Of a DNA stretch of 64,000 bases, positions 2,681 through 63,470 are shown in pieces. The position numbers and the translations under genes are program-made. The notes below the pieces were generated by a model. That model had not been told where the DNA came from. It searched no databases and worked only from the letters and a program-made list of their open reading frames with translations. Position 1 is the first letter of the stretch; each line of letters begins with the position of its first letter. This DNA comes from Octopus bimaculoides (taxonomy: Eukaryota). The DNA is taken from the NCBI RefSeq assembly GCF_001194135.2, contig NC_068984.1:128166842-128230841 (forward strand). The letters are read 5' to 3'.

Positions 2681-2810
2681 GTTAGACAAACTTCGGCACC
2701 ATTTGATGCCATTGTACAGTTTTGATCCAGCTGCTGTAGATGAAGACCAAGATTGGGAATGTGAATTATTAGATGGAGATAAAGAACAACATGTTGCCCT
2801 GAGATCTGAG
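2681..2810 (+). CDS. SMIM29: Internal coding exon of a small integral membrane protein 29 (C6orf1)-like gene
   Basis: Acceptor ...ttggtaacAG at 2679-2680 and donor GTtagt at 2811. The exon encodes (R)LDKLRHHLMPLYSFDPAAVDEDQDWECELLDGDKEQHVALRSE. This matches the recalled cytoplasmic motif of human SMIM29 ([31 protein letters not shown]). The TM-encoding exon is not seen and presumably lies left of the window. Confidence 0.8.
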
Positions 2811-3239
2811 GTTAGTATTTTTTTTATTACAATATTCCATTGCTTCATTTTCTTTATTACAAAAATTGCCTGTAGTGTTAGCCTTTATAACTATATATAT
2901 ATATATATGGACATGTCTGCACATTTTCCATTTATCTTATCATTGTTTCAATGGTTCATGTCTTTGTTCTACCTTGTTTTTGTTGCACTTTCAATCAGAA
3001 TACATTGGTAAATAATAAACACGGCTGTGTGGTTAAGACACTCACTTGGTAACCACATGGCTTTGCGTTCAGTCTCATGATTCTGAGTGCAACATCCCAA
3101 CCATTAAGTCACATGCCCTCATACTGCATCTTCAAATGGATAGTAAACCTATACAAAGCTTGAGTGAGACCCACAATAGAATGTTTACACATCTGGCACC
3201 CGTGCCTATAGCACATAAAAGCACCATTCAAGCATTGGG

Positions 3240-3505
3240 CTTCATGGAAGCAGTGACTGGTGACTGAGATCTTTGGTAATATACCATGCTTGTATAGACC
3301 TGTCAAGCCAAGTAAGACCATAATCGTGGCTGATGCCAGTGTCGGGTCAGTGGCATGTAAAAACCACCCAGTACACTCTTGGAGTGGGTGGCATTAGGAA
3401 GGGCATCCAGCTGTAGAAACTTTGCCAAATCAGATCAAAACCTGGTACCAGCTTCCACTCAAACCATCCAACCCATGCCAGCATGGAAAACAGATGTTAA
3501 ACAGA
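3240..3505 (+). mobile_element. Diverged RTE 3' end copy
   Basis: gactgagatctttgg..caagccaagtaagac..ggcattaggaagggcatccagctgtagaaac..ccaacccatgccagcatggaa. Confidence 0.7.
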
Positions 3506-5174
3506 TGTGGGAAGCTGCTGCTATTGGTCTTACAGATATCCTAGACCACATATAAAACATACCTCCGACTGATTGGCATCATCAACACACTCCCATCTCT
3601 GACCCTTAGACTGTAATTCATTTCCTCACTCTACTCCTTAGAAATGGCTGATCCTGTGTTCCTTCTCACTCTCCCATCTTTCTCACTCTTCTGACTTCTC
3701 ATCACACATATTGTGCTCTCACCCAGGCCACACACTATCAACTTTTCCATTCCTTCATCCCCACAACACCCTCCGTCTGGAATTCCCTCTTTGCCCATAC
3801 TTTACCTGCAACTGATGTCCATTAGTTATTCAAGAACCACATCAACTGTGTCAATCTCTGTCTTGTAAGCTCTTCAAAGGCCTTGAGTACAAACCTCTTC
3901 CTCCAGATCAGACCATTAACAATAACAGTTCTGCATTAGAACTAACTATACCATTTGTATACTCTTTAATCATACACACAATACTCTATCAGATTTATTT
4001 TTCTGAACCATGGCCATTTCTCTGTTGCTGGGCTTTGATGGGTGACATTTTTCATTAATATTTCAATCATTCCGCCTAGGTCAACTTTGCCTTTCATCCT
4101 TTCAGGGTCGATAAATTATGTATCAGTTGCATACTGGGGTTGATCTAATCGACTGGCCCCCTCTCCAAAATTTCAGGCTTTGTGCCTAGAGAAGAAAAGG
4201 ATACTTCAATTTTTCATTAAACATCAATCTTAATTCAGCCATGTTTTCATATTGCAAACTGTTTAATATGATCTATCTCTTGTGGCAGTTGTTGACTTGG
4301 ATACATGTAACAGATATGATTGATTGACCTGCTAAAAATAGCAGCCAAATTTCTCTCAAATCATACCCAACTGTTGTAAATAAAGTTAGATATACCGAAT
4401 GATGTTGGTAAATGCAAGACAAAAGGGGTCACACCTAGAATCCCTTTTACTCATAAGTTTGTTTGATTAGTGCTGATCTGAGGCTAAATGTTAGCAATAA
4501 CATATCCAATAAACAAACTCAATGACTGATCTCTGGAAGAAGCATTCTCACATGTATTCTAAGTCAATTGTCAATAATTCACAGCATGCACAGCCATGGC
4601 TGTGTGGTTAAGAGGCTCACTTTGCAACCACATGGTTTCAAGTTCAGTCCCACTGTGTGGCACCTTGGGCGTGTGTCTTCCACTATAGCTCTGGGCCAAA
4701 CAACACCATGTAGGTGAATTTGGCACATGAAAACTGAGGAAGCCTGCTCTGTGTGTGTTTGTGTGTATGTCTCTTACAAGGCCTTATGGTACATAAAGAA
4801 AACACAGTGGGCTTCTCTGTATACAAACATAATCCATTCCAGAGCCTTGTTCATTACATGAGTAATTAAAATGCATATAAACGGGAGTAACCATTCCAAG
4901 CCACACTCAAACTCCAAACAATTGACCCAGAGCTATAGCAGAATACATTTGCCCAAGGTGCTACACAGTAGCATTCTTAATCACACAGCCATGCCTGCAA
5001 TTATCCTCTCGTTTTTTTTTGTTTTTTTTTTAAGATAGTAGGATGAGATTTTAGAGAGCTTTCACAGGTATTTCTAAGCAAGCTGAGCAACCACATAGCA
5101 CTTCCCTCATTGCCTCATGTGTTTTAGTTGTCCGGCACTATGATGGTGCTCAAGCTTACTCAGATCTTCTACAG

Positions 5175-5208
5175 TTTGAAAGGCCATTTCAGCCAGCAGA
5201 CACCAAAG
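5175..5208 (+). CDS. Candidate next SMIM29-like exon (FERPFQPADTK, phase 0 to phase 1)
   Basis: Flanked by cttctacAG and GTataa, open in the phase required by the 2810 donor. No homology support recalled. Confidence 0.4.
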
Positions 5209-10866: not shown

Positions 10867-10895
10867 ATACTTTATAGTATATTATGCATGTTGCA

Positions 10896-16684: not shown

Positions 16685-19600
16685 TTATTTTTACACTCAC
16701 TCAACTATTACTTTGTGTGGATAGTGTCCCTAACTAATTTGTCTCAATCATTTTTGGAAAATAACTTCACTGATGTTGTAATTAAAAAGATTGATCGTAT
16801 CATCTGGTGCACTGTGGACATGTAAAGAACCTTGTATTTGAATTACTCTAAAGTTCTAAATTCATCTTCAACCTCTCCTATTTGAGTAAACTGTATTCCA
16901 ATATTTTGTAAGGTTTTCAATTTCTTCAGTCAGGTTGGGGGTGTCTGAAACGACCACAATTGCACTCTCTCATCCTACCCTGACTAATTAATGATTTTAA
17001 AAAGTTCATACTTCGATAATAATTTTTTTTTTTTTTTGTTTTTTTCAGAGCCCAAGTTTCCGACATGCACCCAAGCTGAAATTTTCTACAGATCATTCTG
17101 AACTGTAAGAATATTTCCCTCTGGAAGCTTATTGTCTTACAAATCCAGAATTATCAACTTCCTTCCTCTGTTGTGTCAGCTCAAGTATTCTCCAGTATGT
17201 CTTCTGCTTTTGGCATCATTCTCCAGCACAATATTGTTGACAAAAGTTCATTCTCTGAAAAGGAAATAGAGAGAAAAAGAGGACATATAAACATGTTATA
17301 ACCATTTTTGTTAACAAAAGTTAATGTTTTGTTGTTTTTTGTTATTATATTCATTTGTTAATTTTTTGTTCTGAATTTGTTTATAGAGATATCATCACCA
17401 GCACTCTTTTCTTTTTCTCTCTCTCTCTCTCTCAAAATATTTGGATAAATTTCTTCAAAACAATAAGCAAGATGTCTATATCTAGATAATTGTTTTTCTA
17501 ACACCTATTTTATCAAGTTAATTTCTGTTGGATAATTCAGCATAATTCAGAATTTTGAAGGTAATGAAGCATTTCAAGGTATTTTGTTTTCCTTGTTTCA
17601 TACTTGAGCTTTAATTGACAAATACAAAGATTATTATAAACCCTGTATGAATGGATCTTTGAGGGAAATCAATGTATTGCTATTCTAACTATTCTTAACA
17701 AAACTGAAGTTTCAAAAATATAATTATTCAATGTATTTTTCTCAAAAAATTTGTTTTTTAATATATTTAGATCTATCTCTGGTGTTTAAAACCCATAATG
17801 AGCTGCTGAGGTTTTCATGTAGCTGCTTGTTTCTATCTTATTTGTTATTTGACTAAGCTTCTTTTGAAAAGTCCAAAGTTGCATCCTCAAGGTTAATCAA
17901 AGAAAAGACTCAAGTTTTGTATTCAAAGACAACCAACTTGTTATATTTTACCAATATCCAACAAGAACTCTTCTCCAAGTCTTCTTGAAACTTTGTCTCC
18001 CTGTAGTATTTAGAATGTTTCTTGATAACATCTTTTAGTCCATATGTTTGCATCCCTTGCTTTTATCATGCATATCTCTAGACACTTACCATCTATACTT
18101 TTTAAACTTGCCAACAATTTCAGTTAGGATATACTTCTTTTTGATTCCCTCAATCTTATCTATTTAGTAAGTCTGAACATGAAATACATATATATATATA
18201 TATATTTTTTAACTCTATAACACTTTTATACCAATAATGGTGGAATTGTTTCCAAATGACAAACCTTCCAGTTTTCTCTCTTGCAATGTTTCAGTGCTGA
18301 AGATAACCTTTTAAAATCTAGTCTTTTGTTTTTTGTGTTATTTATCCCAAGTGTATCACAAACACTTAATTTTTCTTGTTTTAAATCATCATTAAAATGC
18401 ATATTTTGTTAATTAATTACTATTTTTAAGAAAATGACAGAATATTTACCAAAAATTCTAGTATGTATATTTCTCCATTTTCAATTAGAAAATGGTATTT
18501 GTTAATACAAATATTCTAGGCACTTCTGCACATGTGTCAGTGCTGTGTTGCTGTTTCAAGTGCAGTTTCCGTAACTCTTAAATTTGGGTTCTCTCTTTTG
18601 CCCACACAAAAACACATGTGAACATGTAAACACATGTATACACTTACACACTTCTACATGGTCAAGCTTATAACTCCAGTCCACCCATGACCATATTTCT
18701 AAGTGCCTAATCCAATGTTTTGCTCAATATTTGTTGCTGGTTTTTAAAATTGGAGGCAACCCCAATGTTGCTAAAAATTCTCCTTATTTCCTCTTCTAGC
18801 TTTATAATATCTGATCCTTGCTTTAAATCAATTGACCATTTTTACCTTCTCTCCTCCCTTATTACATCATGTGGCTACAGTGACCTTGCTACTTCCCACT
18901 CTCAATACTCAGTAATATTGCTGATGATCATACAATTGTTGTAATAGTTTGGGCTTGGTAACAGACCTTTACAGTTCATATAATGTTGTGACCATGATAC
19001 TGGCCTCTAATTCCTATGAAATAAGAATCATACTTTGATAAATGTGACCATTCAATCAATGTTTCTTCTTTGTCTAAATATATTTCCATTATGACTCCAC
19101 CATTGCATGACTTTTTTGAGTGATCTTTGACTTCAGTCTTTTAAAGAATATGAATTCTGATATCCTTTGACCCACTTCATTAACAATATTTACTCTAATT
19201 AAGACAGCTGACAGAATTATCTGTATGTCAGACAAATTTCTACCAGCTTAACATTGAAATTCCACCATGGTTGACTTTGCCTTTCATCCTTTTGGGTCAA
19301 TGAAATAAGAGCCAGTTGAGCTCTGGAGTTGATATGATCAACTAGTCTCCTCTCCTCAAAATATCAGGCCTTGTGCCTAAAAATATTTACTCTCATTTCT
19401 CTAACCTTCAGACATTTGTATCATCTAAGAACTACTAACAGATGGGGGTTAAATCAAAATAATTATTTACTTCATTAGTGTTACAAAAATATGAATTAAT
19501 ATATAAAGTATTGTGCCCCATTTTATTCTTGAAGTGCAACATGAATAGCAGAAAATATAATGTAAATGGAAATTGGTTTAGGAGTAGCAACCTAAATATA

Positions 19601-21544
19601 TGTGTACATAAGTGGAGTGAGGAGCTTTATTATTATTATTAGAGTAGGCATAATGGCTGAAAATGTATATCATGGAGGTTAGCTGGATGGAATGGTACAC
19701 AATGTAAGATATGTGAATGAATATTTTACATTGCTATGTTAAACTTGGCTGATCATGAATAACAATCATAATGGTGGTAACAGACAATTAGCTAATGACA
19801 TCAACAACTACCAATATTAAACGATTTATATATTTTAATGCGGTTGTGTAATATTGGTCACGTTTAAAAATGTTACTAAAATTATAAAATTATCATTACA
19901 GCAGCTTGTTCTTCTCTTGACAAAATTGAGATTATATTTAGTTGAATTTGAAACGAATATTTCATGTGTGTGTGTATGTGATTAAATAGATAGATGCATA
20001 CACATTAAACGTAAAATAGTTATCCAAATTCCTATGGATATCTTTTCTTCTTCTTCTTCTTCTTCTTCTTCTGGTAGTCTTATATAAGAACATAATTCGC
20101 TAGAACTTCGGAAATCTTCCTTTGAATGACAGAGAAATCTCCCTTTAATCACATCCTATCAAGTGATTTGAGGAAGACTTCTCTACAGTTTCTTGCAAGT
20201 CAAGTGACAACATAAAGGCTTTCACATTGGCTCAGTGCTATTTAGTTTTTCGATATAGAAGTCAATATATTCTACATAATTTATTATCAAGATATACATC
20301 TTGGTATCTAATATGTCTTAAATGCAATTAGATTTGGAATTTTTAGTCTTGTCTTTTTTTTTTTTTAGTGAAATATCTAGTTTTTTTTAAATTAGATCTG
20401 AAGAAGACCTGTTGGTGCAAATATTTTTTCAAGTTTTAGTTGCATTCATGTGTTGTTTTCTTTTTAAATTTGTTTTCAATTAATTCTTAATTGATTAATC
20501 TGTGTATGTGCACATTTGGTAGGACATGATAACATTATGCAACTATCATTGGTGAATTTAAAAGCAAAGTTCAAGTCATTTCGGATAAGCATAAAATGTA
20601 GTACACACACAACTGTGTGGCAGAGAAGTTTACTTTACAAATATAAAAAAAAACACATCTCAAAGCTTAACTCTTTAGCATTTAATCCAGCCATATCTGG
20701 CCCAAATATTCTACTTGTTTTATGTTGAAACTGACTAGCGCCAACCTCTAACACCTATCCAACATTTGTCGTTCTAAACATAAGGTCTGAAAGCTACAAG
20801 ATAATGCATGATTAATTCAAAATGATATAAATAAGTAGTGCTGAAAGATTAAAGGCTTTCAAGAACATGAGGCCCCAGGACCCAGGCCAAACTATTGAAA
20901 AACTCTGTGAATACTTTAGACAAAATGGAATGGTTGCTAAAATTTGGCATACCTTAGGATTAAATAGTTGGTCTTCTATAAAAGAGATCTTCGGTCTCAG
21001 AATTACAGATTGTTTGAAGCATAAAGTAAAAAGTCCTAATCCTTCATGAACTTTGGAAACATAATCTACCCGCAAAGCATTTTTTTTTTAAATATAAAGA
21101 AAGACGATATGTATCAGTTATATATTAAATGCTAATAAAACCAATTGAAAGAGAAGTAGCATGGCTTATATACACAGCAATTACTAGTTTGCTTTATAAA
21201 TCATTAGCAATTGTTTGCAAATGTTTTACATATACATATATAAAAATATTAATGTGCATATATTCTCAGGTCAAATAATCCAGTATTACACACTTGAATA
21301 TATGAATGTTTCACTCTATATGTAAAACATTACTTTCATGTAAATTTAACTAGAGAACAAAGTTGTGTTGGGTTCAAATTAAATCATTGTCTCCTGTTTG
21401 ATTCATCAATGAATGAAAAGTAATTTTAGTTGATTAGTATCTGTTCTTTTCAAATGTTAGTATTGTATACTAGTCGCTTGATGACACCAATCGTTAGCTA
21501 CAGTTAATTTGCTAATTTTTTCTCATTTTCTTCCTTATTAATAT

Positions 21545-21820
21545 TCTGTTATGTATATAATATATATGTGTATATTTATATATACATGTGTATATATATA
21601 TATATATATGTGTGTGTGTATATGTATATACATGTATGTATGTGTGTATATGTATATACATGTATGTATGTACATGTATATATGCATATATATATGTACG
21701 TATATGTATATACATATATGTATGTGTATGTATGTATATATGCATATATATATGTGTGTGTATATGTATATACATGTTTGTATGTGTGTATATGTATATA
21801 CATGTTTGTATGTATGTATA
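21545..21820. repeat. Compound (TA)/(TG) microsatellite
   Basis: Directly visible; the source of several spurious ORFs. Confidence 0.95.
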
Positions 21821-21866
21821 GCCACTATACTTTTTCTATTTTCTCTCCCTGTTTATTTCTGTGTTC

Positions 21867-21902
21867 CTTTCTGTCAAAGAGTGTAGGCTTGAAGCATAAA
21901 AG
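21867..21902 (+). ncRNA. Degenerate solo minimal hammerhead motif
   Basis: cttt-CTGTCAA-AGAGTgtagGCTT-GAAGC-ATA-aaag. Stem I is intact but the core is mutated. Confidence 0.35.
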
Positions 21903-21988
21903 ACTTTCTCACTTCCCGAGTGTTAAACTAATACATCCGTTTGTTGTTTACACACCCGTCTTCATCTTTAGTTTTATTGTAAATTCTC

Positions 21989-22030
<42 letters not shown>

Positions 22031-22187
22031 CACACACACAAATGTGTATGTATGCGTGTATGAATATATTTGTATATGTATATATACGTGTGTGTGTAAT
22101 TATTTTTGCTTAGAGCCAAAACAATGCAAGTTATAAAAATTGGACATTAAATGATGATGAGGTCGATGGCTTGTAGTTTCACCTGAT

Positions 22188-22227
22188 ATTTCAATGTTTC
22201 AGAGTTAGGATCACTTCTTCGGGAAAT
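22188..22227 (-). ncRNA. Degenerate solo minimal hammerhead motif
   Basis: atttc-CCGAAGA-AGTGATcctAACTCT-GAAAC-ATT-gaaat, with a 5-bp stem I. Confidence 0.4.
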
Positions 22228-23587
22228 CTTCAGAGACATGATGCTGTGAAGAAATGGTCCTAACTCCAAAATATTCAAATAGCAGGTGAAAGTACAAACC
22301 ACTAACCTGTCTTTTTAATTTTTTATAACTTACATTGTTTTGACTTGAAACAAAATTATTTAAAAATACACACACACACACATACACTAAACATATTTAT
22401 TCATTTAATGTCTATTTTATCCGTGTTAGCATGGGTTGGATGGAGACAATTTGAGGCAGCATTTTATATGGTCAGATGCCTTTCCTGATACTAACCCTTA
22501 CCTATTAGGTAAGGATTTTTATTCAGCTGGCCTTCAAAAGCACAAAGCTACAGTCATACCAACATTTTCCACACACACACACATATGATGGGCTTCCAAA
22601 CAGTTTCTCTTTCCTAGTTCCACAAGGGTTAGCCTGGGATTATATTAGCAGACACTTGCTAGCTAGCTGTTCAACCACTTAAGTAACTCTTAAGTCTTCT
22701 TTTTAAGTTGTAGACTATTGCAAATATAATTTGCATGATTTTTAAATTTTATTTTAAAGCATCTTATACATTCATTGTTATAGATTTTAAAATGTATGAG
22801 AAAGTATGTCATACATTTATCCTCATAGATTTAAAAAGCCAATTGGCTTTTGTATGGCTCGCCTCATTCCACACTTTTGTGAAATTTTTTGTGTGACCAT
22901 TGATAATAATAACACCTTGTGTGTTTGTCTCACCACATACCTTCTCTCATAACCTAGAATACTGGCTTGCAAAAATCAAACACAGCTAAGTTAAAGTGAA
23001 GTGAATTTTCCTTTATTATTTCCCTCTTTGTGGAAGTTCATCTCATTTTTGCATGCAGTAACATTTGATCCTCAAATGAAATAGCTCAAAATTATTGCTT
23101 ATCTCTGATGACCCCATACACTTGCTGGCTCCCGGTATGCAGAGTTCTCGACTGGTAGCACTTGCATGTGCGAGTTGTTTGCAAGACATGTTCTATTCTT
23201 CTTCTTACCATCATGTAGCTATGTGTTTGCTACAGCCAAATTGGTGATAGCTTTATCTGTGTGTAATCATATTTTTGTTTTATAATGGGTTAGACATTTG
23301 TACCACTATTGATAATATTTTACATTCTTCTTTAGCATATCTGTTTTTCCTTGGTTTTGAATATTTTAGCTTTGAAAGATTGATAAAGCTATATTAGATC
23401 TATTACCACCACCCCTACTCTAATCATGATTAACAAACAAAAAAAAACAATAATTTGAAATATTTCAACATAAATTTTTGTTTCATTTTCTTATTTCTCC
23501 ATTTATATATGGTAGTTGCCATAGTGCAATCTTTGTATTGGCTATTATGATACCTGAACACCAAGTCAGAATTGGATGATAGGTATC

Positions 23588-24110
23588 AAAATCTGTCCTC
23601 TAACTAGTCACATCTTAACATAGACAACAGAGGAAACTAAAATTGCACTGAGAGCTAAGCTAACATTGCTTTGACATTTCTACATGTGAGGATGTTTCTA
23701 GTGGACTTACTTATCTTGATACAGGTTTTCTCATCTCCTTAACCAACTAAATTTGATTTTATTTAATTTTAGAGGTGTAATAGTCAATTCTTGGTATGAA
23801 AGCTTCATATAATCTTCCTACTTTTTCTAGAACAACTGGTCAGAGTTATGTAGTAGGTTTCTAAATTCATCCTCTAAATAGCCACATTTTAACATAAATA
23901 ACAGAGGACACATTATTACAATTGCATTGAGAGATAAGCGAACATTACTTTGACACTTTTACATCTAAGGATGTTATTTCTAGTGGACTTATTTATTTTG
24001 ACACAGGTTTTCTCATCTGCTTAACCAAATAAATTTGATTTTATTTAATTTTAGAGATGTGTTAGTTACTTCTTGGAATGAAAACCTAATAACATTTTCC
24101 TGGTTTTTCT
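23588..24110. repeat. Diverged tandem duplication, period about 274 bp
   Basis: cctctaa at 23597 and 23871; long shared blocks such as aaatttgattttatttaattttagag. Confidence 0.9.
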
Positions 24111-24577
24111 TTATTGTATAGATATCTCTAATGAGCATCAGTTTATACTACTGAATCATTTATTATTTGCTGCTTTGTAATTGTTGCTGGCATCTAACAA
24201 CCGATTAAAACTTTGTTTAAGGCAGCAATAGTTATACAATAAATGTTAAGCTGATTAGTAACAATAGTTGCTTTACATTCCAAAACTCAAGCACATACTA
24301 TCAGATTGCAAAGTCATTAAAGTATTAGACGACAAGCCTTGTGCTATTGGTCCTGACTCTACCCATTTCATGTTTAAACTCTTTAGAGTCAACTTCATTT
24401 TACATCTCTCCAAGATTAATAAAATAAAGTACCAGGCAAGTACTGGGATCAATGTAATTGACTACTTCCCTTTCCATAAATGTTGGGCCTGTGTTAGAAA
24501 TTATTAGCAAAGTGGATTGGCAGAACATTTAAAGAAAACTATGATATAAACTATAAGGCTCGAAGAGATTATAATAA

Positions 24578-24687
24578 ACTCTCTCTCTCTCTCNNNNNNN
24601 NNNNNNNNNNNNNNNNNNNNNNNNNNNNNNNNNNNNNNNNNNNNNNNNNNNNNNNNNNNNNNNNNNNNNNNNNNNNNNNNNNNNNNN

Positions 24688-24747
<60 letters not shown>
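24578..24747. repeat. (CT)n, gap, (CA)n microsatellite
   Basis: Directly visible. Confidence 0.95.
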
Positions 24748-24750
<3 letters not shown>

Positions 24751-25104
24751 CGCAGTCTGTTTCTGCAGGTGTTTAGAACAAGTTGTTTCATCAACTAGTA
24801 TCAAAGGACCATGAGAAATTTTCTTTGTTCTCTACACAATTGTCAGGTCTGTGTTGTACTCAGAACCAGTCAGTGCAGTTGTGTGGCATCAAAACAATTT
24901 TGTAGGGAAAAAAAATAAAAGAAGACGCCCTTGCCAGCTGTTTTCATGAGCTACATGTTGCTTTATTACAGTTGTAAATACTCACCAATCAGGTTTGCAT
25001 CTAGTAGAATAAATCTTTCAGTCTTTGTATGAAAGACTCTTCTAACTTATAGAGTTGTATGGAACTCCATAAATATGTCTAATTTCTGTAGAAATGTTTA
25101 TTAA

Positions 25105-25413
25105 GGCGCATAGCTCAGTGGTTAGAGCGTCAAGCTTACGATCGTGGGGTTGTGAGTTCGAATCCTGGACTGGGCTGCATACTGTGTTCTTGAGCAAGAC
25201 ACTTTATTTCACGTTGCTCCAGTTCACTCAGCTGTAGAAATGAGTTGCGACGTCACAAGTGCCAAGCTGTATCGGCCTTTGCCTTTCCCTTGGCTAACAC
25301 TGGTGGCGTGGAGAGGGGAGGCCAGTATGCATGGGTGACTGCTGGTCTTCCATAAACAACCTTACCCGGACTTCTAGGTGCAAACCCATGGTCAGTCATG
25401 ACCGAAGGGGGTC
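25105..25413 (+). mobile_element. tRNA-derived SINE, family D
   Basis: GGCGCATAGCTCAGTGGTTAGAGC..GAGTTCGAATCC head, followed by tgtgttcttgagcaagacacttta (CORE/V-like central motif). Confidence 0.8.
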
Positions 25414-27142
25414 CTTAGGTTATTACGGTAAACCACTTGGGATCTACATAAACCTCGCATGAACATTAGGCTTACAGAAAACTGTACTTCCTTTTAGAAT
25501 ATTTTCTATTTGGTTTCAATTCTTGGTTAATATGGCTTTATCTTTTTATTTTTTGAGGACGGTATGAATGCTATAACTTTTGTTACTCCCCGCGTTAAAC
25601 CAGAAGTTTTTAAAGTGAGTGGTACCACTCCCAAATGGGTGCTGGGTATGTCAAAGGGGAGTGAGGTAACATAATTAACACACTAAATTCTACTTGTAGT
25701 ATTTATTATGTTATGCATGTTAAAACTAGTTATGGTTATTAAAATAAAATGACATCTCATTAGGCACAGAAGTCATTAACTCGAAATGTATAAAGTATGT
25801 CTGAATTATTTTTTATCATTTCACTGTTAAAAGCTTATACAATCCATTTTTAAAGTAAAATTTATAACTTATCATTCATGTTAAGTAAGTTTAGTCATGA
25901 TATCTCACTGACTACAAAAGAAAAATGGTTAAGAACAACTGAGTGAAACCATTGTTAAATTGTGTGACGATAGATCTTTATTGTCTGATGAGGAGCTTTC
26001 AGTTGTTCCAGTGACTGAATTACCTGCTCCTGAATTAATATCTAAGCAACTGAGCATTTTACAGACATATGAACCCTGATCATAATTCTCAGCTAAAATC
26101 AGCACAACACAGGGGATGAGGGGATGACAAGATTGTAACTTTTGAATTACAGGTATAATCCACCAGCTGGGCTTCTGTACAGTTTCTTTCTACACTAATT
26201 TCATGCACACAATATGATTCAGCCCAATGCTATAGAAAATGACATGTGTCCAAGATTCCACACAGCAAGACTGAACCCAAGACCTTGTGGATTCTTTAGC
26301 CATTCAGCCGTACCACACCTATGTTAAACTGTGTAGTGGGACTGTGAGGCAAAATAAGAAAGTACCAGACTAAGAGACCTTGCAGGTTTTTTTTTTCTTT
26401 TAATGTTCGAATTACTCAAACATTGATTTTGTTTATCATCTTTTTATGGTTGATAAAGATCCTTAACTTGAACCATTTAGCATTCAAACCAACACCAGTT
26501 GTCAAGCAGTTGAAGCACAAAGTCACACACACACACACACATATATATAATTATGTGTGTGTGTGTATGATAAATTCCAAATTCACTCGCAATGCATTGG
26601 TTTGCCCTAGACTATATTTGAAGAGACTTGTTCGAGGTGTCATGCAGTGTGACTCAACCCAATACCACATGGTTGCAAAATAATCTTCTTAACCACACAG
26701 CCATCAATATGAAAATGTTTGATCACCATATATTTAAGAATATTACATTCTGTTACTCCTGTTCCTCTACTAGATGGCAGCAGTGTACTGACAACAAAAT
26801 GTCACAAATTATAGCCACCATTTTACCATCTTATTTGAAATCTTTCAGGTTAGTTAATATTTTGTTTTCTCAGTCTTCTTTTCTACTCTTAATTAGTCAA
26901 ATTTGGGTTATCGTTCCTCTTGAAATAATATCATTGTCATCTCCATATTCCTGAAGGTCATTGCCACTCTTTGTTAAATACTTTGATTAAATTACCTAAA
27001 TCATTGAATGCTTACAGAATAGAATTGGTTTAGTATTATCAATGTCTAAATCTCTGAGATGAAATATCTTGATAATTAACTTCATTTGTGTTTTCTTTTA
27101 TGCAATATTTCATTGATTTTTCCCTGTTGTCATTATCAGGGC

Positions 27143-27525
27143 TGTGGAGGCGCAATGGCCCAGTAGTTAGGGCAGTGGTCTCGCGGTCATAGGATCGCGG
27201 TTTCGATTCCCAGACCGGGCGTTGTGAGTGTTTATTGAGCGAAAACACCTAAAGCTCCACGAGGCTCCGGCAGGGGATGGTGGCAAACCCTGCTGTACTC
27301 TTTCACCACGACTTTCTCTCACTCTTACTTCCTGTTTCTCCTGTGCCTGTAATTCAAAGGGTCAGCCTTGTCATACTGTGTCACGCTGAATATCCCCAAG
27401 AACTACGCTAAGGGTACACGTGTCTGTGGAGTGCTCAGTCACTTGCATGTTAATTTCATGAGCAGGCTGTTCTGTTGATCGGATCAACTTGAGCCCTCGA
27501 CGTCGTAAGCGACGGAGTGCCAACA
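27143..27525 (+). mobile_element. SINE family A copy
   Basis: Full length, TSD cattatcagggct. Confidence 0.9.
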
Positions 27526-28789
27526 CATTATCAGGGCTCTTGTTCCTGAATGTCTACATCCCCTCAGGTTAGATTTTGAACCTTTGTCTCTAAATGTTAA
27601 TTCCCTTCGTTTAGAAATAAAGATTCAGTTCAAATCCTGCCTGGGACATTGTATACATTGACTAATTTCCCTAATGAGAATCAGTAATCAATGAAAACAT
27701 GAAATATAAAGTTAAATATTTGAGAAAACTAATTAGATTTCTGAAATATAAATCCAAATCTTTCTGCAAAGGCTTGAACTGCAAGATCCCAGTGTTGAAG
27801 CTTATAATATCTTGATAGAATATGGAAGAAACTTCAAAATTTTAATGTCCTGAATTTAAAGATCAACTGTGTTTTATTAAAAAAAAAATTGTTAATATTG
27901 TTAAAATTGTTAATACTTTTTGTTTTTGTAATTGGTTTGCAAGATTTTTGAGGTGTCTTGAAACATATTTTGTTGCGTCTCAGGAGGGTCATTATGCCAA
28001 TAATAAACACATGCACTGGTTTTATTTCACTTCTTTTAATTATTATTAGTAGTAGTTAATTGGTTAACTATGTAACCAATTAACTAGTTGATTATTTGAT
28101 TAATCATTCAACTAATCAATCAATCTGCTAGGTTTGTTAAAGTTCTTTCCTTGCCATTTGTGACCTCATCAATAAATCCTGGAAAATTACTTGTATAAAT
28201 TATGGTTTAAAAATTACTGCTATTTCTAGTGATGACGATATTGATAATTATATGAAATTTGTTAGTATTTAAGAAAATCTAGTCTTGAAATGCCCATTCA
28301 TTACTTATCAGAATTACTATATACAGTCTCTGACTTGTATCACAATCCATCCTATAATCAGCTTCATCACTGACTATTCAGTTTATCATTCAACAAAGTT
28401 GTTCATAGTTTCTTTCCCTTTACTAAATCCAATTTATTCTGAGTACCTCAAGCAAAAATATTCTCCCAAGAACGATCTAGGTACAGAAACTGTCACTGTT
28501 GCTCACCGAACTTCTTCCTTTTCAACCGATACATTCCAACACAATTATAATGTCTGATGTCTTATAGTCAATGTTCTGTGTTCGCTTCATTCAATGACAT
28601 TTTTTTGATCTGTGATATTTATTTTGAAGATTGCAATAAATCTCCTGGTCTTTTCATTAAACACAGTCAGCTTTTGTCTTTATTTATCTTTCTTTTGTTT
28701 GATTTTCTTTTTAATTGTTTCAGTCATTGGGCTGCAGCCTTGCTTAGGGCACCATTTTGAAGGGTTTACAAGGGTAGGATATCAAGTGG

Positions 28790-29275
28790 ATTGGCCCAGT
28801 ATACTCACCCTGCTCTAGCAGCATCATCTGTGCTGGCTCAGTCATGTACATCGCATGCCAAACGGGAAGCTTCTAAAAGACCTCCTGTATGGAGAATTGG
28901 CCACCAGCACAAGAGCATGAGGACAACCTCATCTTCATTTCAAGGACGTCTGTAAGGGAGATATGAAGTCGCTTGATCTGGATGTCCTGAGACGGGAGGA
29001 GGTCGCAAATGATTACTCACGCTAGAGACAAATATTGCGAAAGGAGATGAAATGAGGGGAAGAAAAAACAGGAACTCGCCACCAAAGAAAAGTGCACTCG
29101 ACAGAAGGAAAAACTAGTAGCGCTGGCAGAGATCTCCTTCAGATGCAGTTGCTGCATGTGTGACTGTCACTCCCATGTGGGCTTCTACAACCACAGCAGA
29201 TGCTGTACCACCATCAGCAGCTGACATGATTTTTTCAGGTGCAGGTCAATGGTCTCTCAAGATCAACAGTTGCCT
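28790..29275 (+). mobile_element. Decayed RTE-BovB-like LINE 3' relic
   Basis: PSILTLL*QHHLCWLSHVHRMPNGKLLKDLLYGELATSTRA*GQPHLHFKDVCKGDMK, followed by a C-terminal CxxC...CHS..G..NH..C zinc-knuckle remnant. Confidence 0.8.
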
Positions 29276-29339
29276 ATTACTACAAGGGTAAGCTGATTAT
29301 GAAGGAATGATGCTAGAACTGTGAAATTTTGCATGCATT

Positions 29340-30328
29340 AATTTAAACTCTTCATACTGACATGATTGCTACATTAAGAGATGATGCTCTAGCTTTATCA
29401 ACAGTGCAAACGTGGGCAGCTGAATTTAGGAGGGGAGAGTCTTGAGGATGACCCAAGGTCTGAATGTCCTGCAACTGCCACCACTGATGAAAAAAACATT
29501 ATGTTCACCACATGGTGATGGATGACAGGTGATTGGCTGTAAATCAAATAACCAATGCTATTAGCGTCTCCCTTGAGCAAGTTGAGAATATTTTGCACAA
29601 TGAACTTGGCATGATGATGGTTACTGCTTGGCAGACAAGATGTTTTCTGATACATAATCAAAAGCACACCAAGGTGATCACATCACAATAAAATCTGAGA
29701 CTGTTTGAGGTGGTTTCCTTAGACAATCCATACAGTGGAAACACCTCTATATACCTACTCGAAAGAAGGCCAAGCTTGTTTCATCTGTGGGTGATGGGCT
29801 CAGTTTTTTGGAATGCAAAAGACTTTGTATTTAATGGCTATCTTCAAAAGGGCCATATCATTAATGGAGAGTAGAATACAAACTTGCTGAAGCAGTTATG
29901 AAAGGCTATCAAGACCAAACAGCCAGGAAAACTGATAAAGGGGGTCTTGTTTCATCAGGACAATGCTTTAGCACACAAGTCCTTTGTTTCAATGGCTGCT
30001 GTGCATGACTGTGGCTTTGAACTGGTTGATCACCCTCCTTAATCTCTTGATTTGGCCCCATCTAACTATCATCTGTTCCCCAACATGGAAGAATACTTGA
30101 CTGGGAACGAGAATTGCAGTGATGATTATGTCATATCTGCTGTTGATGGCATTTTTGAGCAATAAGATGAAAGTTTCTTTACAAATGAATTCCAAGCACT
30201 GCAACACCAATGGAAGAAGTGTGTGGACCACAAGGGTGGTGGGGGAGCTGTGTTGAAAAATAAAGTTTATTTGGCCACATTCTATGAAAGTATCTTGGTT
30301 AGCCTATGAACTTTTCAGCATACCCTCA
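29340..30328 (+). mobile_element. Decayed mariner (Tc1/mariner) transposase relic with right TIR
   Basis: WAAEFRRG.ESLEDDPRS.., VLFHQDNA, HPP*SLDLAPSNYHLFP, QHQWKKCV. Ends gaacttttcagcataccctca-TA. Confidence 0.9.
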
Positions 30329-31079: not shown

Positions 31080-31294
31080 AGCAGCAAGCTGGTCGAAACG
31101 TTAGCACACTGGGTGAAATGCTTTGTGGTATTTCGTCTGTCTTTATGTTCTGAGTTCAAATTCCATCGAGGTTGACTTTGCCTTTCATCCTTTCAGGGTC
31201 GGTAAATTAAGTACCAGTTGTATACTGGGATCGATCTCATCAACTGGCACCCACCCCCAAAATTTTGGGCCTTGTGCCTAGAGTAGAAAAGAAT
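31080..31294 (+). mobile_element. SINE family C copy
   Basis: Near-identical to 10651-10866. Confidence 0.85.
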
Positions 31295-31931: not shown

Positions 31932-31975
31932 TTGGGATCTGATGAGATGCTTTATGGCATCTCATCAGATCCCAA
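31932..31975. repeat. Perfect 19-bp-stem hairpin containing CTGATGA
   Basis: ttgggatctgatgagatgc-tttatg-gcatctcatcagatcccaa. Confidence 0.95.
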
Positions 31976-34899: not shown

Positions 34900-37800
34900 G
34901 ATTTATTGTTCACTTTGGCTTTTATGTAATGTAATTTGATGAAAATTCCATAACCACCCCAACCCCATATTTTTCCCCATACACACACTCAAATCATAAA
35001 TACATCATAAGATATAAAAAGAAACCTTGCTAAGTTACAAGTTCTATACATACAGAACCTGGAAAATGTTTCCAATAAAATGAAAAAAGAAAAAGAAATA
35101 CAAAACAATAATGAAACACTGAGCTGAAAGTTTAAAAGTCACAACCTAGAAATACACAATACCAGTGAAATATGCAAACAGGCCACCTTAGTAGATTCTG
35201 TTACAATTCAGGCATAAAAACATTCAAATTATTTCAAAATATATTTGCAGAAATGTCATTAAATCTAGTATTTTTTTCTCTCTTTAACAAGTCTGAAATT
35301 GGCAGGGAGCCCTCTTGATTCCAACCTGCCTGAGACCACACTTGGTTTCATGATACAAAATCTCGTTTTGATATGCTTATATTCAAACGAAACCTTTCAT
35401 CATAATTTTATATACGAACATCTTATGATGTTCCAACCACCAGCTTAACAATGAAGTCAGATATCTTACTATATCTCTCTAAATGTTTCATTATTTTCAA
35501 AATAATTGAAACATACAGGCAGTGTATTACTTAATAAATATGGTCACAAAAGGGTTAATATTTCTCAGATAATTCAACTAGATTAAAACACAATTACACT
35601 CTCAAAAGAAAGCTGAACCAAAACCAATAGTTTCAGTAATCGTTGGCACATGTTACCAGCAAATTTGTTCATCTACAAGGGATTTCTGTGTCAGCACCAA
35701 AGAATCCATTACAATTTTGTTTTCAATAGTTTGGTACATTTCTTTTAAATTATTTCAATTTCTGTTTGCAATGGTCCAAACTACTATTATTTCTACTACA
35801 TCTTTTCTAATAAACAAACAAACAAACAAAAAAAAACATGAAAATCCACAACAAAAATGCCATAAAGAATACAATTTGTAATGAATAAAAATGTCTGATG
35901 TTCCATGAAAACAGTTAATGATGTTAATGAAACTTCTGGTGCAAAGGAAGTTTTTTTAGCTACATTTACACATCTTTGATCACACATATACATCTAATTT
36001 GGCAGGAAGAAATCACAATGACATAGAGAAAGAGGAAATATAATATTGTTTCTTTAGAAAACACCCAAAACTTTGACTAAATTGAAAATAAATCTTGTAA
36101 ATTTCTGTGGAGTTAAATATTTTAAAATAAAAAAATGTTTATGTGAATATTAAGGGGAAAGAACTTATAGCATGCTGGCATGCCTCAAAAATCGTTAGAG
36201 AGAGATTTCCCAGCACCCCAAAATTTTCAACCTAAGGGGGTGAATTGTTTTTGTTTTCTTCTTCTTCTTCTCGCACTTATGTATATATTTATGTATAAAT
36301 AAAACTACCCTTATCGCTTATTCAGTTATTTAAGAAATTAAAAATATGACTACTGTTTTATATTTTATTTTACTTTTAATATGATCACTTTCTGAGCATT
36401 ATTCTATGTATTGTTCATGCATTCTCGACTACATTTTCTAATGAGTTTCTAATATGCATCTGAGCACCACATACAATAATTTCATTGTTGTTTTATTATG
36501 TTGAAAAGAATGGAGCTCAGTTTTCCTGAGAAATGATCAAAGTTGTAACATCATTTTAAAATGGAATCTAAAGGAAGAGATGTTAATTTCTTTTTTCTTT
36601 TTTATTTAGGAAATCAGGTTCAATAGCTAAAATATACTCTAAGAGTGAGAAAGTGGGAGCAAGGAAACATTTTTCTAATAATGGAATTTGCATTAAAAAA
36701 TTTCCTCTAATTAGTCTTTCTATTACATGCACAGGACCTGAAATTTTGTTGGAGGAAGCTAGTCGACCCCAGTGCTCAACTGCTACTTATTTTATCAACC
36801 CTGAAAAAATGTAAAGCAGAGCCAGCCCCAGCAGAGTTTGAAAGAATGTAATGTCCAGAAGAAATGTTGTTAAGCGTTTTGTCTGATACAGTATCAAGTC
36901 TGCCAGATTATTGCCTTAAAATTTGTTCCAGTTATGAAATGTATTTTGTCTGACTGTTACTGAAAATAATATAGGTCATTATAACCATGGTTTTCAGAAC
37001 ACATTTGGATTTGATTGATTCTTGAGATAACTGAAGAAAGGTTGTCACACAGCAGGGTTAAAGCAGCTCCAAGCGAATAGCAACAACTATAAAACTCAAC
37101 ACACTAATAAAAATTAATAAGCTTTTCAGTACATAATTTGAACTAAAAATTGTCTGTTAGGCTAAATATGTATTGGCACCAGTTTGTAATATAGTTGAGC
37201 TTTCATCAGGAGAAACCTGAAACTGCCTACAAACATGGGAATTAAAGCAATGGCAGTACACTACAACAACTGCAAAATGTATTCCTTCAAAAACACTACT
37301 ACTACTACTACTACAACCACTACATAAAACAACAAATCTTCTGCTCTTCAGTTTGAACCTAGTCACTTGGTAACACGTCTAAAGGAGTTACATAAGAAAA
37401 CCGATTCATATCAACTAAAATGTAATCAGTCATGAGTGATGAATGATAAGATTTATGATTTGTGAAAGCATGAATTTTGGGCAACACAATTTATGGATTA
37501 TGGAGTCCAGCAGTTAGTACGATAAGTGTTAGCTAATACAACATCACAAGGATAATAAGAATTTTGAGGAAATGCACTGTTTTGATATAAGTTTAAATAT
37601 ATATTTTGCAACATTTGACTTTGGAAAACGCACAGGAATAATTACACACACACATTAATACATTACATATACATATAGTAACGATATTTTACATATACAC
37701 ATCATATAGTAAGAATAGATTATGCACACATAGAGTAACAATACATTAAACACTAGCAACACATTTCTTATAATTCCTATCCTAGCATCTACGAAAAGAA

Positions 37801-38165
37801 AGAGGCTTTGGATAATGTTGTCCTAGGTGTACGGTGTCTATGGAAAAGACAAAATAGTTACAGCTGGAATAAATTATGCTATATTTATAAGCAACTGAAA
37901 AAGAATCCCATTATCTAAAGTAAACAAATTTTTACCCCAAATCCGCGCAAAATAATGATAAATACACACTATTTAATTTTACTAGTTGTCTCCCTTGCTC
38001 CTCAACTCTATTTTTCAATACTATATTTCTTTTCTCATGACCATTATTCTTTCTGCAACGCACACACGCACGCACACGTTTTGTATTATATATTCCTGTC
38101 GTTTACTGCTGCCATTGTCAGACACAGTGCCATCGTGGATGGAAGTATGGCAGAGAACTGGTCAA
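34900..38165 (-). other. Probable long U-rich 3' UTR of the HMGA-like gene
   Basis: Follows the stop codon, is strongly A-rich on + (U-rich in the mRNA) and is poor in SINEs. AATAAA candidates on - at 36601-36606, 36364-36369 and 34902-34907. The true end is not determinable. Confidence 0.4.
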
Positions 38166-38264
38166 TTAGTCAGTCCCCTCGTCGTCCATGTCATCTTTGC
38201 TGCCGTCTCCAGCTCCGTCAGATTCTATGTCATCTGGGTTGGAAGATTTGTTACGACGATCAGC
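38166..38264 (-). CDS. HMGA: Last coding exon of the HMGA-like gene, acidic C-terminal tail
   Basis: Strong acceptor tattttctttttgcAG. Encodes ADRRNKSSNPDDIESDGAGDGSKDDMDDEGTD* (TAA at 38166-38168). It is GC-richer than the flanks, and an acidic tail is an HMGA hallmark. Confidence 0.75.
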   Translation of the reverse strand, partial: ADRRNKSSNPDDIESDGAGDGSKDDMDDEGTD

Positions 38265-41087: not shown

Positions 41088-41120
41088 CGTTTTGCTGTGC
41101 TGTTTCTTCATGAGATCTTT
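41088..41120 (-). CDS. HMGA: 33-nt linker exon of the HMGA-like gene (KDLMKKQHSKT)
   Basis: Acceptor gttatgttttccAG, donor ACG|GTgagt, phase 0/0. Same size as the 11-aa spacer exon 4 of vertebrate HMGA2. Confidence 0.7.
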
Positions 41121-57227: not shown

Positions 57228-57280
57228 ATGTCGTATGGATATATATTTTATTTATTGGTCACAATACATGTATTAAAAAA

Positions 57281-60203: not shown

Positions 60204-63200
60204 TAAGACAGTTATTTTACTAAATAATTCATTATTTTCAAAATTCATTGAAAATAAGGCATGAGAAAAAAGGTAACAAAAGGGTTAAATATATGGGTCA
60301 AATCAACTGTGTAGCTACCATTTACAACACAAATAATTAATGACTTTCACAGGAGTCAAATATATTTCAGTACAGACCCTGGACTACTTTAAAATCTGTA
60401 TTGTTAACAATAGCCATTTCAAAATCTGTAGTGGTTAGCTCACAATAGCCACTTTAAAGTCTGTATCCACTATTTAACAATTTATAAAGTATTTGCTAAC
60501 AATATTTCAAAATTTGAAAGTGGTAAACTGGCATAATTGTTAGCAAGCCAAGCAAAATGCTTAGCAGTATTTTATTTATTGTTACACTCTGAGTTCAAAT
60601 GCTGCTGAGGTCGACTTTGTCTTTCATCACTTCAGGGGTTGTTAAAATAAGTACCAGTTGAGTACCGGGGTTGATGTAATCAACTTATCCCCACCCCAAA
60701 ACTGCTGGCCTTGTGCCAAAATTTGAAACCGGTATTTCAAAAGTTGATAAGAATTTAGAAAAGAATCAGTATGTGTTGCTAGTTAAGCTGCTTCAATTCA
60801 GAATTTATAGTATTTCATTAAAAAGTTTATAAATAAACGATTTTTTTTCTTATATTGAAAATTTTATTATACATAATCAATAGACTGAATAATCAATTTC
60901 AGTGATTAAATTTTTTAAATATGTAAACTAATTTATATCTTATGACTAGCATATTTGTCATATGTGTATGTGTGTGTGCTTGAGAGAGAGAGAGAGAGAG
61001 AGAGAGTGAATGCATGTCTGTACCACTGTCATGATAACAGACAAGGACAGTTTCCACCCAAACATCCATACACCAAATTTTTCAGACATCCTATTGAAAT
61101 AACTCTTATCATACCCTCGATGATGTCCTTTTTTTTTTCTTTCTGGTATCAGCCATTGATACTACAGCCCTCTTGGAGCATCACTTTCAAGAGTGTTTTT
61201 TATTATTTCTTTTAAATAAAAAGTAACTCAGTGTTTTGTTTTGTGTTTTTTTTTTTGGTATGAAGAAAGATAACTCAGGTAGGTATGACTTCTACAAGGT
61301 GTTTTTATTTGATACATTGTTTTTAATTCATTCCATACTGATACACACACACACATACTGGGCTTCTGCAGTTTCTATCTACAAAATTTTATTCACAGAA
61401 CATTGGCCAACTTCAGGCAATGTATAACAGAAGACACTTTGCAATTTTCTGTGCAATGGTATCAAACCTGGAACCATATGGTTCCAGGTTGCCTGCTAAT
61501 AATTGTAAAAGACAAATAAAAGTAACACACCAGAAACGCATTTCATAAACATCAAATGCAACACAAAGAATATGCCCACATCCACAGCCTCTCATGATCC
61601 CTATATCCACCATCTCTATGTTCCCATGCTGGTGTGTGCTGAATGAGTCTTCAATATATTTTTCATATGTGAAGCCCCATTCTTATCAGATCTACGTTCT
61701 TTTACACAAGCTGTTCTTGTTGTACTCTAACCATTTGCACCATCTTTCAATAATTATTTACCCAGCATGCATTATTCATTAGCATATATTACATGCAATA
61801 AGGTCAATGTTTTGAAGAAAGGTATCAGACTGCAAAGCCTTCATCTTAGTTATCACACTTTCATAGTGTTGCCTTTGTGATAGATGCAGTCCATCATCAT
61901 CATCATCATCATCAACAATTAATGTCTCACTTTCCCATGTTTGCATGAATGAGATGGAATTTGTTGAAGCAGATTTTTCTATGGCCAGATCCCCTTCCTA
62001 GTGCCAACTATAGAGCCTTGTTTCCAAGCAAGGTTAATATTTTCTCATAGCTACACATTTCATAGAAGACTGGAAACAAATAACCTCACTTATATAACAA
62101 TGAGGCTCATTTACAACCATCACGATATCTAGAAAGGGTACATACACACGCACACATGGTGGGCTTCTTTCAGTTTCCATCTACCTAATCCACTCACAAT
62201 GCTTTGGTTGATCCAAGGCTTTAGAAGACAATTGCCCAAGGTGCATGCAGTGGGACTGAACCCAAAACCACATGGTTGGCAAGCAATCTAAATGTATAGT
62301 TAAAAGTACCCAAATGTAGAATAGAATGAGATTGACAATGATTATAATAATGATGATTTCTTTTTTTAGTTGTTGATGATGATGATGATGATTAGTAATC
62401 ATAACATATATTGAGCACATAACTTGTATTTAATATTTTACCCTTAGTCAATAACTATTTATATTTCAGTCTCTTAAATGATTCTACCAACAGCACCACT
62501 ACCACCATCATAATCAAACACATCTTTCAACACAACTTCAGTCAAACATTTCATTAGGTACGGCTTTAATCAAATACATATTGAACACCAACCTTTAAAA
62601 GAAGACTGTCAAACACATACATCAAACACACATAAACACTTTTAAACACAATTAGGACTATTAACCAGTTTAAAATTATAAGGGTAAAGAGAAACTCAAT
62701 ACACTGTATTCCTAGCAATACAAATCCTTATTGTCTTTTATAGAAGGAACAGCATCCATACTGGCTCATCTCATTTCTCTACATTACATTTTCATCAACC
62801 AAAACGGAGCCTCTTCTATGTGTTCACTCAACAGACTAGAAATAACAGCTGAATCTCCCTAAAAAAATGCCCTATTTGTTTTAGGAAAGGAAAGATTCAT
62901 TGGATATAATGTGGTTCTAGATTCACTGTCTGATCAAAAGACAAGAGATCATGGCTGGAATATCTTTGGTCAGGACTTAAACAACGACTTCCATTGATAT
63001 TCTAGCTATTTTAAAATTATTGCTGGCTTCTTCAACAATATTTACAAGGCACAAATCAAACATTGCAAACATTGTGACATCATTCAATAAAATAAATATA
63101 AATAAGATTGAAACCAAAATAGGAAACAACATCATCAATGTGATTATGGATATAATCATTACAGTGTAATCTGACTCCATTAGGTCTCAAATATACAAAA

Positions 63201-63281
63201 AATCAAAAGCAATGGAACTGACTTGTTTTTCAAAGAGATCCTATCAAATACAAAGCAAACACCAATTAATCATGCAGATAA

Positions 63282-63365
63282 ACACACAAAATTTCAATTA
63301 GAACACACAAAATTTCAAATAGGACACACAAAATTTCAGATATGGTATGACACACAACATTTCAG
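63282..63365. repeat. Four copies of acacacaa(a/c)atttca (21/21/26-bp spacing) just inside the AT-hook exon donor
   Basis: Starts at 63282, 63303, 63324 and 63350. Confidence 0.9.
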
Positions 63366-63401
63366 ACATGACATGCGACATTTTAAAGAATTTGCACCAA
63401 C

Positions 63402-63470
63402 CTTAGAAGGTTTTTTGTTTTTACTTCCTTTTGGTCGACCCCGTGCTCTCTTCGGTTTTGGTTCTTCAGA
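63402..63470 (-). CDS. HMGA: AT-hook exon of an HMGA-like (HMGI-C/HMG-I/Y) gene
   Basis: Minus-strand acceptor ttctttatgatatttccAG and donor AAG|GTtggt; 69 nt, phase 0/0. Encodes [23 protein letters not shown], closely matching the second AT-hook of vertebrate HMGA2 ([21 protein letters not shown]). Confidence 0.85.

Follow-up and report, generated by a model that had tools for sequence, protein, structure and literature searches.

A convergent SMIM29-like and HMGA-like gene pair in Octopus bimaculoides: a candidate conserved gene linkage

In human, SMIM29 is the immediate downstream neighbour of the plus-strand gene HMGA1 and lies on the other strand (PMC7831742; PMC8009153), and members of the same two gene families are neighbours in an octopus. 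Were the two arrangements inherited from a common ancestor, or did they arise separately? We addressed this question in a 64-kb stretch of the Octopus bimaculoides genome (the window), which holds the 3' parts of two protein-coding genes, an SMIM29-like gene on the plus strand and an HMGA-like gene on the minus strand, standing tail-to-tail and both truncated by the window edges. An original prediction, made from the letters alone, had named this pair, assigned it to a cephalopod-like genome and dated it to before the protostome-deuterostome split. Our analysis showed that the window contains two bona fide O. bimaculoides genes, convergent, with no recognisable gene in the 21-kb non-coding interval between them. 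The identities, structures and orientation of the genes were established directly, as was the arrangement in Octopus, bat and kiwi.

Two genes at the edges of the window

All four exons of the original prediction proved genuine and exact in their coordinates, namely an SMIM29-like exon on the plus strand (2681-2810) and three HMGA-like exons on the minus strand (63402-63470, 41088-41120 and 38166-38264), and the exon strands confirmed the tail-to-tail orientation. The set was incomplete in one respect: the last SMIM29-like coding exon, at 17049-17108, had been overlooked. Because the SMIM29-like gene has this further exon, the spacing between its stop (17108) and the HMGA-like stop (38166) is 21 kb, not 35 kb. 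The N-terminal and transmembrane exons of the SMIM29-like gene, together with a microexon, lie upstream of window base 1, and exon 1 of the HMGA-like gene, with its first AT-hook, lies past window base 64000. The features are listed in Table 1.

The penultimate SMIM29-like exon starts with LDKLRHHLMPLYSFDP and ends with ALRSE. Its first base finishes an Arg codon, and it is preceded by a phase-2 intron (acceptor ...aacag/G TTA GAC) and followed by a phase-0 intron (donor GAG/gttagt). When four other cephalopods were compared, 18-20 of 129 nt differed, all of them synonymously and none non-synonymously, and the peptide was unchanged in other cephalopod contigs and transcripts. The last exon, which follows a long polypyrimidine tract and a CAG acceptor, differed from the transcripts of related species at 11 of its 60 nt, again only synonymously. 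Since every cephalopod difference was synonymous, the two exons bear a clear signature of purifying selection. The transcripts of related species splice straight from the 2681-2810 exon to the 17049 exon, across an intron that holds two assembly gaps flanked by repeat copies (14507-14666 and 15817-16371); their SMIM29-like 3' untranslated region (UTR) gave no alignment to the window.

The family assignments of the original prediction were borne out by BLASTP of the exon peptides. Exon 2681-2810 matched human SMIM29 with 17/31 residues identical (55% over 31 aa, E=8e-10); the sequence of the human query was confirmed by the vertebrate SMIM29 family that we retrieved. The exon carries the family motif [VL]D[RK]LRHHL[LM]P[LM]YS[YF]DPA and an acidic stretch, in columns that are invariant in the alignment. 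A word-indexed search with the exon peptide alone returned cephalopod fragments only, and a profile search to which human SMIM29 was added retrieved the vertebrate SMIM29 family together with P0116, a 153-aa cephalopod protein found on 22 transcript contigs and bearing the precomputed annotation PF27898 C3orf18_N. The last two exons of P0116 are identical in peptide to the two exons of the window, and its N-terminal ectodomain, single transmembrane helix and basic stop-transfer stretch (TWAYILVPLGAIVFLGIVIFVIVVILKKNR) belong to exons outside it. A Pfam scan of the exon peptides gave no match, and neither did the human SMIM29 control, the library lacking PF27898 and its AT-hook model being too short. 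No entry for the SMIM29-like gene turned up among annotated octopus proteins in the searches made here. At the DNA level, the Owenia locus (L026 16404-16522) aligned to window positions 2679-2800 with 71% identity over 125 nt, and this motif exon was the only cross-phylum DNA match in the window. The product, with its conserved LRHHL-P-YS-DP motif in the juxtamembrane region, is predicted to span the membrane once.

A phmmer search with P0116 among 1.84 billion representatives found 202 relatives. The 30 that were looked up were named 'SMIM29(-like)' or 'C3orf18 homolog' and came from gastropods, bivalves, an annelid, a nemertean, hemichordates, chelicerates and insects (including Haliotis, Mytilus, Owenia, Tubulanus, Saccoglossus, a spider and insects); vertebrate SMIM29 proteins appeared in the list with E values of about 1e-10 to 1e-11. 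Vertebrates have two paralogues, SMIM29 and C3orf18, and the octopus gene is most aptly regarded as their one invertebrate counterpart, probably co-orthologous to both.

In the SMIM29 family, the basic stretch after the transmembrane helix is encoded by a 26-nt microexon running from phase 0 to phase 2. Its product is GTAATGTACATCCAGAAGAAAAAGCG in bat and IVVILKKN plus AG in cephalopods, the frog microexon is likewise 26 nt, and length and phase are common to cephalopods, bat and frog. The intron position and phases around the motif exon were also the same in bat, kiwi and loach. The 26-nt piece is a separate exon in cephalopods, because transcripts exist with and without it. Two cephalopod transcripts (L001 and L002) omit exactly this piece, a length of 3n+2, and consequently shift frame and reach a stop directly after the transmembrane helix. 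They use another last exon (IHMKIQGY...KKN and stop); neither this exon nor the upstream SMIM29-like exons were found in the window, and this last exon may be species-specific or concealed in an assembly gap. On a further contig from a related cephalopod (L011), a complete FAM177-like open reading frame (ORF; 168 aa, PF14774) occupies 250-756 on the minus strand and the SMIM29-like gene 1173-1634 on the plus strand. The FAM177-like ORF is antisense and lies 417 nt upstream of the SMIM29-like start codon, which suggests a head-to-head arrangement with overlapping 5' ends.

The HMGA-like exons are bounded by canonical AG/GT sites, and their in-frame product matches residues 31-96 of P0004 at 100% identity; P0004 is a 96-aa protein listed at NCBI as 'high mobility group protein HMGI-C isoform X2 [Octopus bimaculoides]'. 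This identity also bears out the assignment to a cephalopod-like genome. Exon 1 of the gene (MADVAAEQ...KRKRGRPRKLKPDQ) carries the first AT-hook. The O. vulgaris homologue, P0005, is encoded by a 71-kb gene (L010) with exon 1 placed 25 kb upstream of exon 2, and there hook 1 (L010 10437) and hook 2 (35773) lie on separate exons in that order. The gene has several features of the HMGA family: each AT-hook stands on its own exon, with hook 1 of the RGRGRPRK type preceding hook 2; exon 63402-63470 encodes an extended second hook of HMGA type and is the only such hook on the minus strand of the window; and the acidic tail, ending in GSKDDMDDEGTD before the stop, has its own last exon in a protein of about 100 aa. 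The full set of three AT-hooks known from the family is not present. Both P0004 and P0005 have two, and when the window and the 91-kb O. vulgaris locus were scanned for the motif, no third AT-hook was found on the strand of the gene. On these sequence features we file the gene as HMGA-like, and its product is predicted to be an architectural chromatin protein with two minor-groove-binding AT-hooks and an acidic tail. The 33-nt exon between hook 2 and the tail is alternative, because O. vulgaris isoform X2 lacks it although the O. vulgaris DNA preserves its sequence, apart from one H-to-R change, and its two splice sites.

Against human HMGA2, 27 of 39 residues were identical in a match that covered both hooks and the linker (E=7e-14, 48.9 bits), and against HMGA1a the corresponding values were E=4e-10 and 38.9 bits. 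The octopus protein scores slightly better with HMGA2 than with HMGA1, and its NCBI name is likewise that of HMGI-C. Without a third hook, it is also without the Trp that follows this hook in HMGA2, amphioxus and Saccoglossus (PMC7013770). The sole PDB match of exon 63402-63470 was the second DNA-binding domain of HMG-I/Y (2EZD, E=0.015). On the minus strand, AATAAA occurs after the HMGA-like stop at 36606, 36497 and 36369 (1.56-1.8 kb downstream). Unlike vertebrate HMGA2, the octopus gene has no let-7 seed match in the 8 kb downstream of its stop (38165 to 30000).

Other candidates for hooks were rejected. RGRGRPRNLG at 15582-15593 lies on the plus strand, opposite to the gene, is without the PKGSKNK extension and belongs to an ORF end beside the gap 15817-16371; the remaining RGRP-type motifs in the window sit in repeats or on the wrong strand. 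A separate observation concerns the large HMGA-like intron, where an ORF of 158 codons, stop-to-stop, occupies 54555-55028 on the HMGA strand. It is single-copy and ends coiled-coil-like in ...MDLMRLKKKALESKLKLKN before its stop. In O. vulgaris (L010 45066-45538) the frame remains open and free of indels, and identity reaches 95.3%, compared with ~91% nearby. It matched no Pfam family and no PDB entry. The ORF lies outside the interval between the SMIM29-like and HMGA-like stops. It may represent a nested gene or an alternative exon.

Table 1. Features of the SMIM29-like and HMGA-like genes (window coordinates unless another sequence is named)
Feature	Position	Strand	Remarks
Penultimate SMIM29-like coding exon	2681..2810	+	AG acceptor/GT donor; peptide LDKLRHHLMPLYSFDPAAVDEDQDWECELLDGDKEQHVALRSE
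Last SMIM29-like coding exon, SPSFRHAPKLKFSTDHSEL and TAA stop	17049..17108	+	tblastn with P0116, 19/19 residues identical
Predicted SMIM29-like 3' UTR	17109..18500	+	extent inferred from related-species transcripts, at least 1.39 kb beyond the stop codon
Non-coding spacer	18501..36600		limits approximate; includes gap 24594-24687
Predicted HMGA-like 3' UTR	36606..38165	-	down to the first minus-strand AATAAA
Last HMGA-like coding exon, acidic tail ADRRNKSSNPDDIESDGAGDGSKDDMDDEGTD and stop	38166..38264	-	100% identical to P0004 residues 65-96; AG acceptor
Alternative 33-nt HMGA-like exon, KDLMKKQHSKT, no AT-hook	41088..41120	-	in O. bimaculoides isoform X2
HMGA-like exon, second AT-hook	63402..63470	-	69 nt, phase 0 at both ends; 100% identical to P0004
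SMIM29-family microexon	bat L023 10290-10320; frog L024 10301-10326; P0116 residues 83-91

The arrangement in other animals

The arrangement was compared through SMIM29 loci with 10-kb flanks from bat, kiwi, loach, Rana temporaria, Owenia and Saccoglossus. A flank of 10 kb is shorter than the 21-kb octopus spacing, and the same reach would have missed the octopus pair. In bat (L023), SMIM29 occupies 10001-10998 on the plus strand and a 107-aa three-hook gene 12663-16740 on the minus strand; in kiwi (L025), SMIM29 occupies 10001-10663 on the plus strand and a 97-aa three-hook gene 12561-15375 on the minus strand. The coding ends are 1.7-1.9 kb apart in these two animals. The convergence of human HMGA1 and SMIM29, on which the original prediction had drawn, was thereby reproduced in bat and kiwi.

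The octopus pair resembles the amniote HMGA1-SMIM29 pair at 6p21.31 in gene families, in tail-to-tail orientation and in the absence of a protein-coding gene between the two. Amniote SMIM29 has the same exon structure as the octopus gene, with the 26-nt microexon and the intron phases, and amniote HMGA1 and its octopus counterpart agree in their first two AT-hooks, which are of the same types, follow in the same order and occupy separate exons, and in an acidic last exon. The pairs differ in spacing (21 kb in octopus, less than 2 kb in amniotes) and in the number of AT-hooks (two in octopus, three in amniotes), and the last SMIM29-like exon in octopus shows no sequence relationship to that of vertebrates (VVHGW...). 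A second point of comparison is the set of metazoan microsynteny blocks described in PMC9023564, in which, as in the octopus pair, orthologous neighbours are common to a coleoid and to distant animals; a block there requires three or more genes and six or more further species, whereas the octopus pair comprises two genes in two lineages. Neither gene is mentioned in the accessible part of the supplementary microsynteny tables of that study.

The wider neighbourhood was also considered. No NUDT3 exon was found in any flanking sequence examined. Zebrafish hmga1a and hmga1b both retain nudt3 and pacsin1 close downstream (bioRxiv 10.1101/241927), and the wider HMGA1 region is therefore conserved in teleosts.

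Inheritance, coincidence or misassembly

The pair is present in Octopus, bat, kiwi and human, and was not found within the 10-kb flanks sampled from Owenia, Saccoglossus, loach and frog. On balance we favour, with modest confidence, the reading that octopus and amniotes inherited their arrangements from an old linkage that existed before the vertebrate genome duplications, was probably bilaterian, and was broken or stretched in several other lineages. Human SMIM29 lies with GRM4 and HMGA1 at 6p21.31 (PMC7831742), and GRM2 and RASSF1 accompany C3orf18 at 3p21, in chr3:50.3-51.9 Mb (PMC6591479). Since the paralogue pairs SMIM29/C3orf18 and GRM4/GRM2 are co-located in this way, a block older than the vertebrate genome duplications fits. 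By our own estimate, which was not computed, two random gene orders share ~1-2 adjacencies, and a given adjacency would recur by chance with matching orientation at a frequency on the order of 1e-4 to 1e-3. The squid Euprymna retains 275 metazoan microsyntenic blocks, compared with 216 in scallop (PMC9023564). As few chance adjacencies are expected and cephalopods have kept hundreds of metazoan blocks, a shared adjacency is likelier to be inherited than coincidental. The same figures temper the surprise that the original prediction implied at retention in a coleoid: the squid keeps about as many blocks as the scallop.

A number of observations weigh against inheritance. The Owenia fusiformis locus (L026, 27 kb) has no AT-hook; there, a gene with a Dynein_light domain lies on the same strand 4.9 kb downstream of the SMIM29-like gene, which is preceded by a phosducin-like gene. 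No AT-hook was found in the 22 kb of the Saccoglossus locus (L027), of which 3.5 kb is N, or within 10 kb of smim29 in loach (L021) and Rana temporaria (L024). The adjacency that the original prediction had proposed to look for in hemichordates and annelids was therefore seen in neither Saccoglossus nor Owenia within 10 kb. Among these taxa only Owenia is a real negative, because a different gene intervenes there, while flanks of 10 kb would miss a spacing like that of octopus. The genomic landscape of amphioxus hmga is reported to resemble that of HMGA2 rather than that of HMGA1 (review, PMC7013770), and among molluscs the comparison covered Octopus only. In addition, gene pairs are deliberately avoided in the microsynteny field, where they give more false positives (PMC9023564), and the octopus case, a two-gene pair in two lineages, belongs to this false-positive-prone class and has fewer than the three co-occurring orthologues of a block in the sense of that study. 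Shuffling inside one ancestral linkage group also raises the number of adjacencies expected by chance.

The main alternative is coincidental re-association, in which the octopus adjacency arose independently in the reorganisation of the coleoid genome and the amniote pair dates back no further than vertebrates or, at most, chordates. In its favour are the absence of the pair from the annelid, hemichordate, teleost and frog flanks that were sampled, the very different spacings, the HMGA2-like landscape reported for amphioxus and the known weakness of gene pairs. No further shared neighbour was found either, the FAM177-like neighbour in the related cephalopod being not known as a 6p21 gene in human. 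Chance, on the other hand, would have had to restore both the adjacency and its orientation, the negative flanks fell short of the octopus spacing, and the distribution of the human paralogues suggests linkage before the vertebrate genome duplications (PMC6591479; PMC7831742). We regard coincidence as a serious possibility that falls somewhat short of an even chance. Common descent of the arrangement is what we infer; its retention since the bilaterian ancestor is plausible, perhaps slightly better than even, and unproven. Of the original dating, the part that stands is the sharing of the pair by octopus, bat, kiwi and human; an origin before the protostome-deuterostome split goes further than this, with the Owenia, Saccoglossus, loach and frog negatives, weak as they are, and the amphioxus landscape opposed to it.

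The pair could also be spurious if the two genes had been wrongly joined at the assembly gap between them, which we consider very improbable. This gap (24594-24687, 94 N) is the only one between the genes. It is not bridged by independent sequence, the O. vulgaris locus compared ending at ~31047, and this too counts against an inherited linkage. The 94 N stand between (CT)n and (CA)n, as is typical of an unresolved microsatellite within a scaffold, and the gap looks like an unresolved or collapsed microsatellite. The window contains six gaps, none of which overlaps an exon. They are all of different length, which suggests size estimates from read pairs rather than fixed-size chromosome joins, and at all three that could be tested (44340-44349, 55389-55690 and 58905-59148) the O. 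vulgaris sequence was collinear to both edges, with no extra AT-hook exon.

The interval and the proposed retention of the pair

The statement that no other recognisable gene lies between the two held in every search made. There was no significant Pfam match among 150 stop-free ORFs of at least 64 aa from the whole window, neither Rfam at gathering thresholds nor ARAGORN, run for tRNAs, gave a hit in the window, and in the O. vulgaris annotation HMGA has no neighbouring gene within 10 kb on either side. Of the interval 17109-38165, 14% is repeated elsewhere in the window, compared with 27-36% of the large introns. The O. vulgaris locus is collinear with the window from 63774 to ~31047 at 88-95% identity; over 31047-38165 the identity was 92-95%, and in the introns 88-95%. 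Conserved non-coding sequence was found neither beyond the genus nor across phyla: apart from the SMIM29-like exon, the window gave no DNA match with other phyla or, among the sequences compared, with other cephalopod genera.

Dispersed repeat families of ~400 bp, possibly short interspersed elements (SINEs), occur at 56814-57232, 59809-60201, 13512-13920, 10119-10513 and elsewhere, and are abundant in the O. vulgaris locus as well; they flank the gaps at 14507 and 58905. Microsatellites of TA/TG type at 21508-22110 and 24688-24750, the latter bordering the gap 24594-24687, give rise to spurious ORFs of up to 201 aa that are rich in Y, I, C and V.

If the pair was inherited, what might have held it together? 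The original prediction had proposed shared 3' or regulatory constraint, that is, active retention through overlapping or shared 3' ends or through regulatory elements common to both genes; in a genomic regulatory block of this kind, HMGA would be the target and SMIM29 a bystander. In amniotes the coding ends are so close that the 3' UTRs must nearly abut, and HMGA, a chromatin regulator of development, has very large introns in octopus (its O. vulgaris gene spans 71 kb for ~100 aa), both of which would favour such a constraint. In octopus, however, the two stops are 21 kb apart and a 3' overlap is implausible, the SMIM29-like exon is the only sequence conserved at the DNA level as far as other phyla or the other cephalopod genera compared, and the spacer is no more similar to O. 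vulgaris than the introns are. Nor was the pair kept in Owenia. Minus-strand ORFs at the ends of related-species transcripts, considered as an overlapping HMGA 3' end, were T-run artefacts. Active retention appears unlikely to us, and the proposal finds no support in the octopus, given its 21-kb spacing and the lack of non-coding conservation beyond the genus. In amniotes, the simplest mechanism of retention would be a very small breakpoint target. In octopus, HMGA regulatory DNA might at most reach into the spacer and the SMIM29-like intron. A broader scenario, in which a bilaterian-age linkage has lasted for more than 550 million years in coleoids and amniotes through an HMGA regulatory landscape extending through its neighbour, and was lost only where HMGA regulation was rewired, seems doubtful.

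In summary, our results provide a corrected gene model for an octopus member of the SMIM29/C3orf18 family, reveal that the 26-nt microexon of this family is conserved from cephalopods to vertebrates, and show that the octopus HMGA-like protein has two AT-hooks only. The two genes form a candidate conserved gene pair of modest weight, a single two-gene case beside the hundreds of metazoan blocks documented in cephalopods. If the arrangement was inherited, it would be one more ancient gene linkage that survived the reorganisation of the coleoid genome, and it would open a way to study how HMGA, an oncofetal chromatin factor, is regulated, by way of its uncharacterised neighbour.

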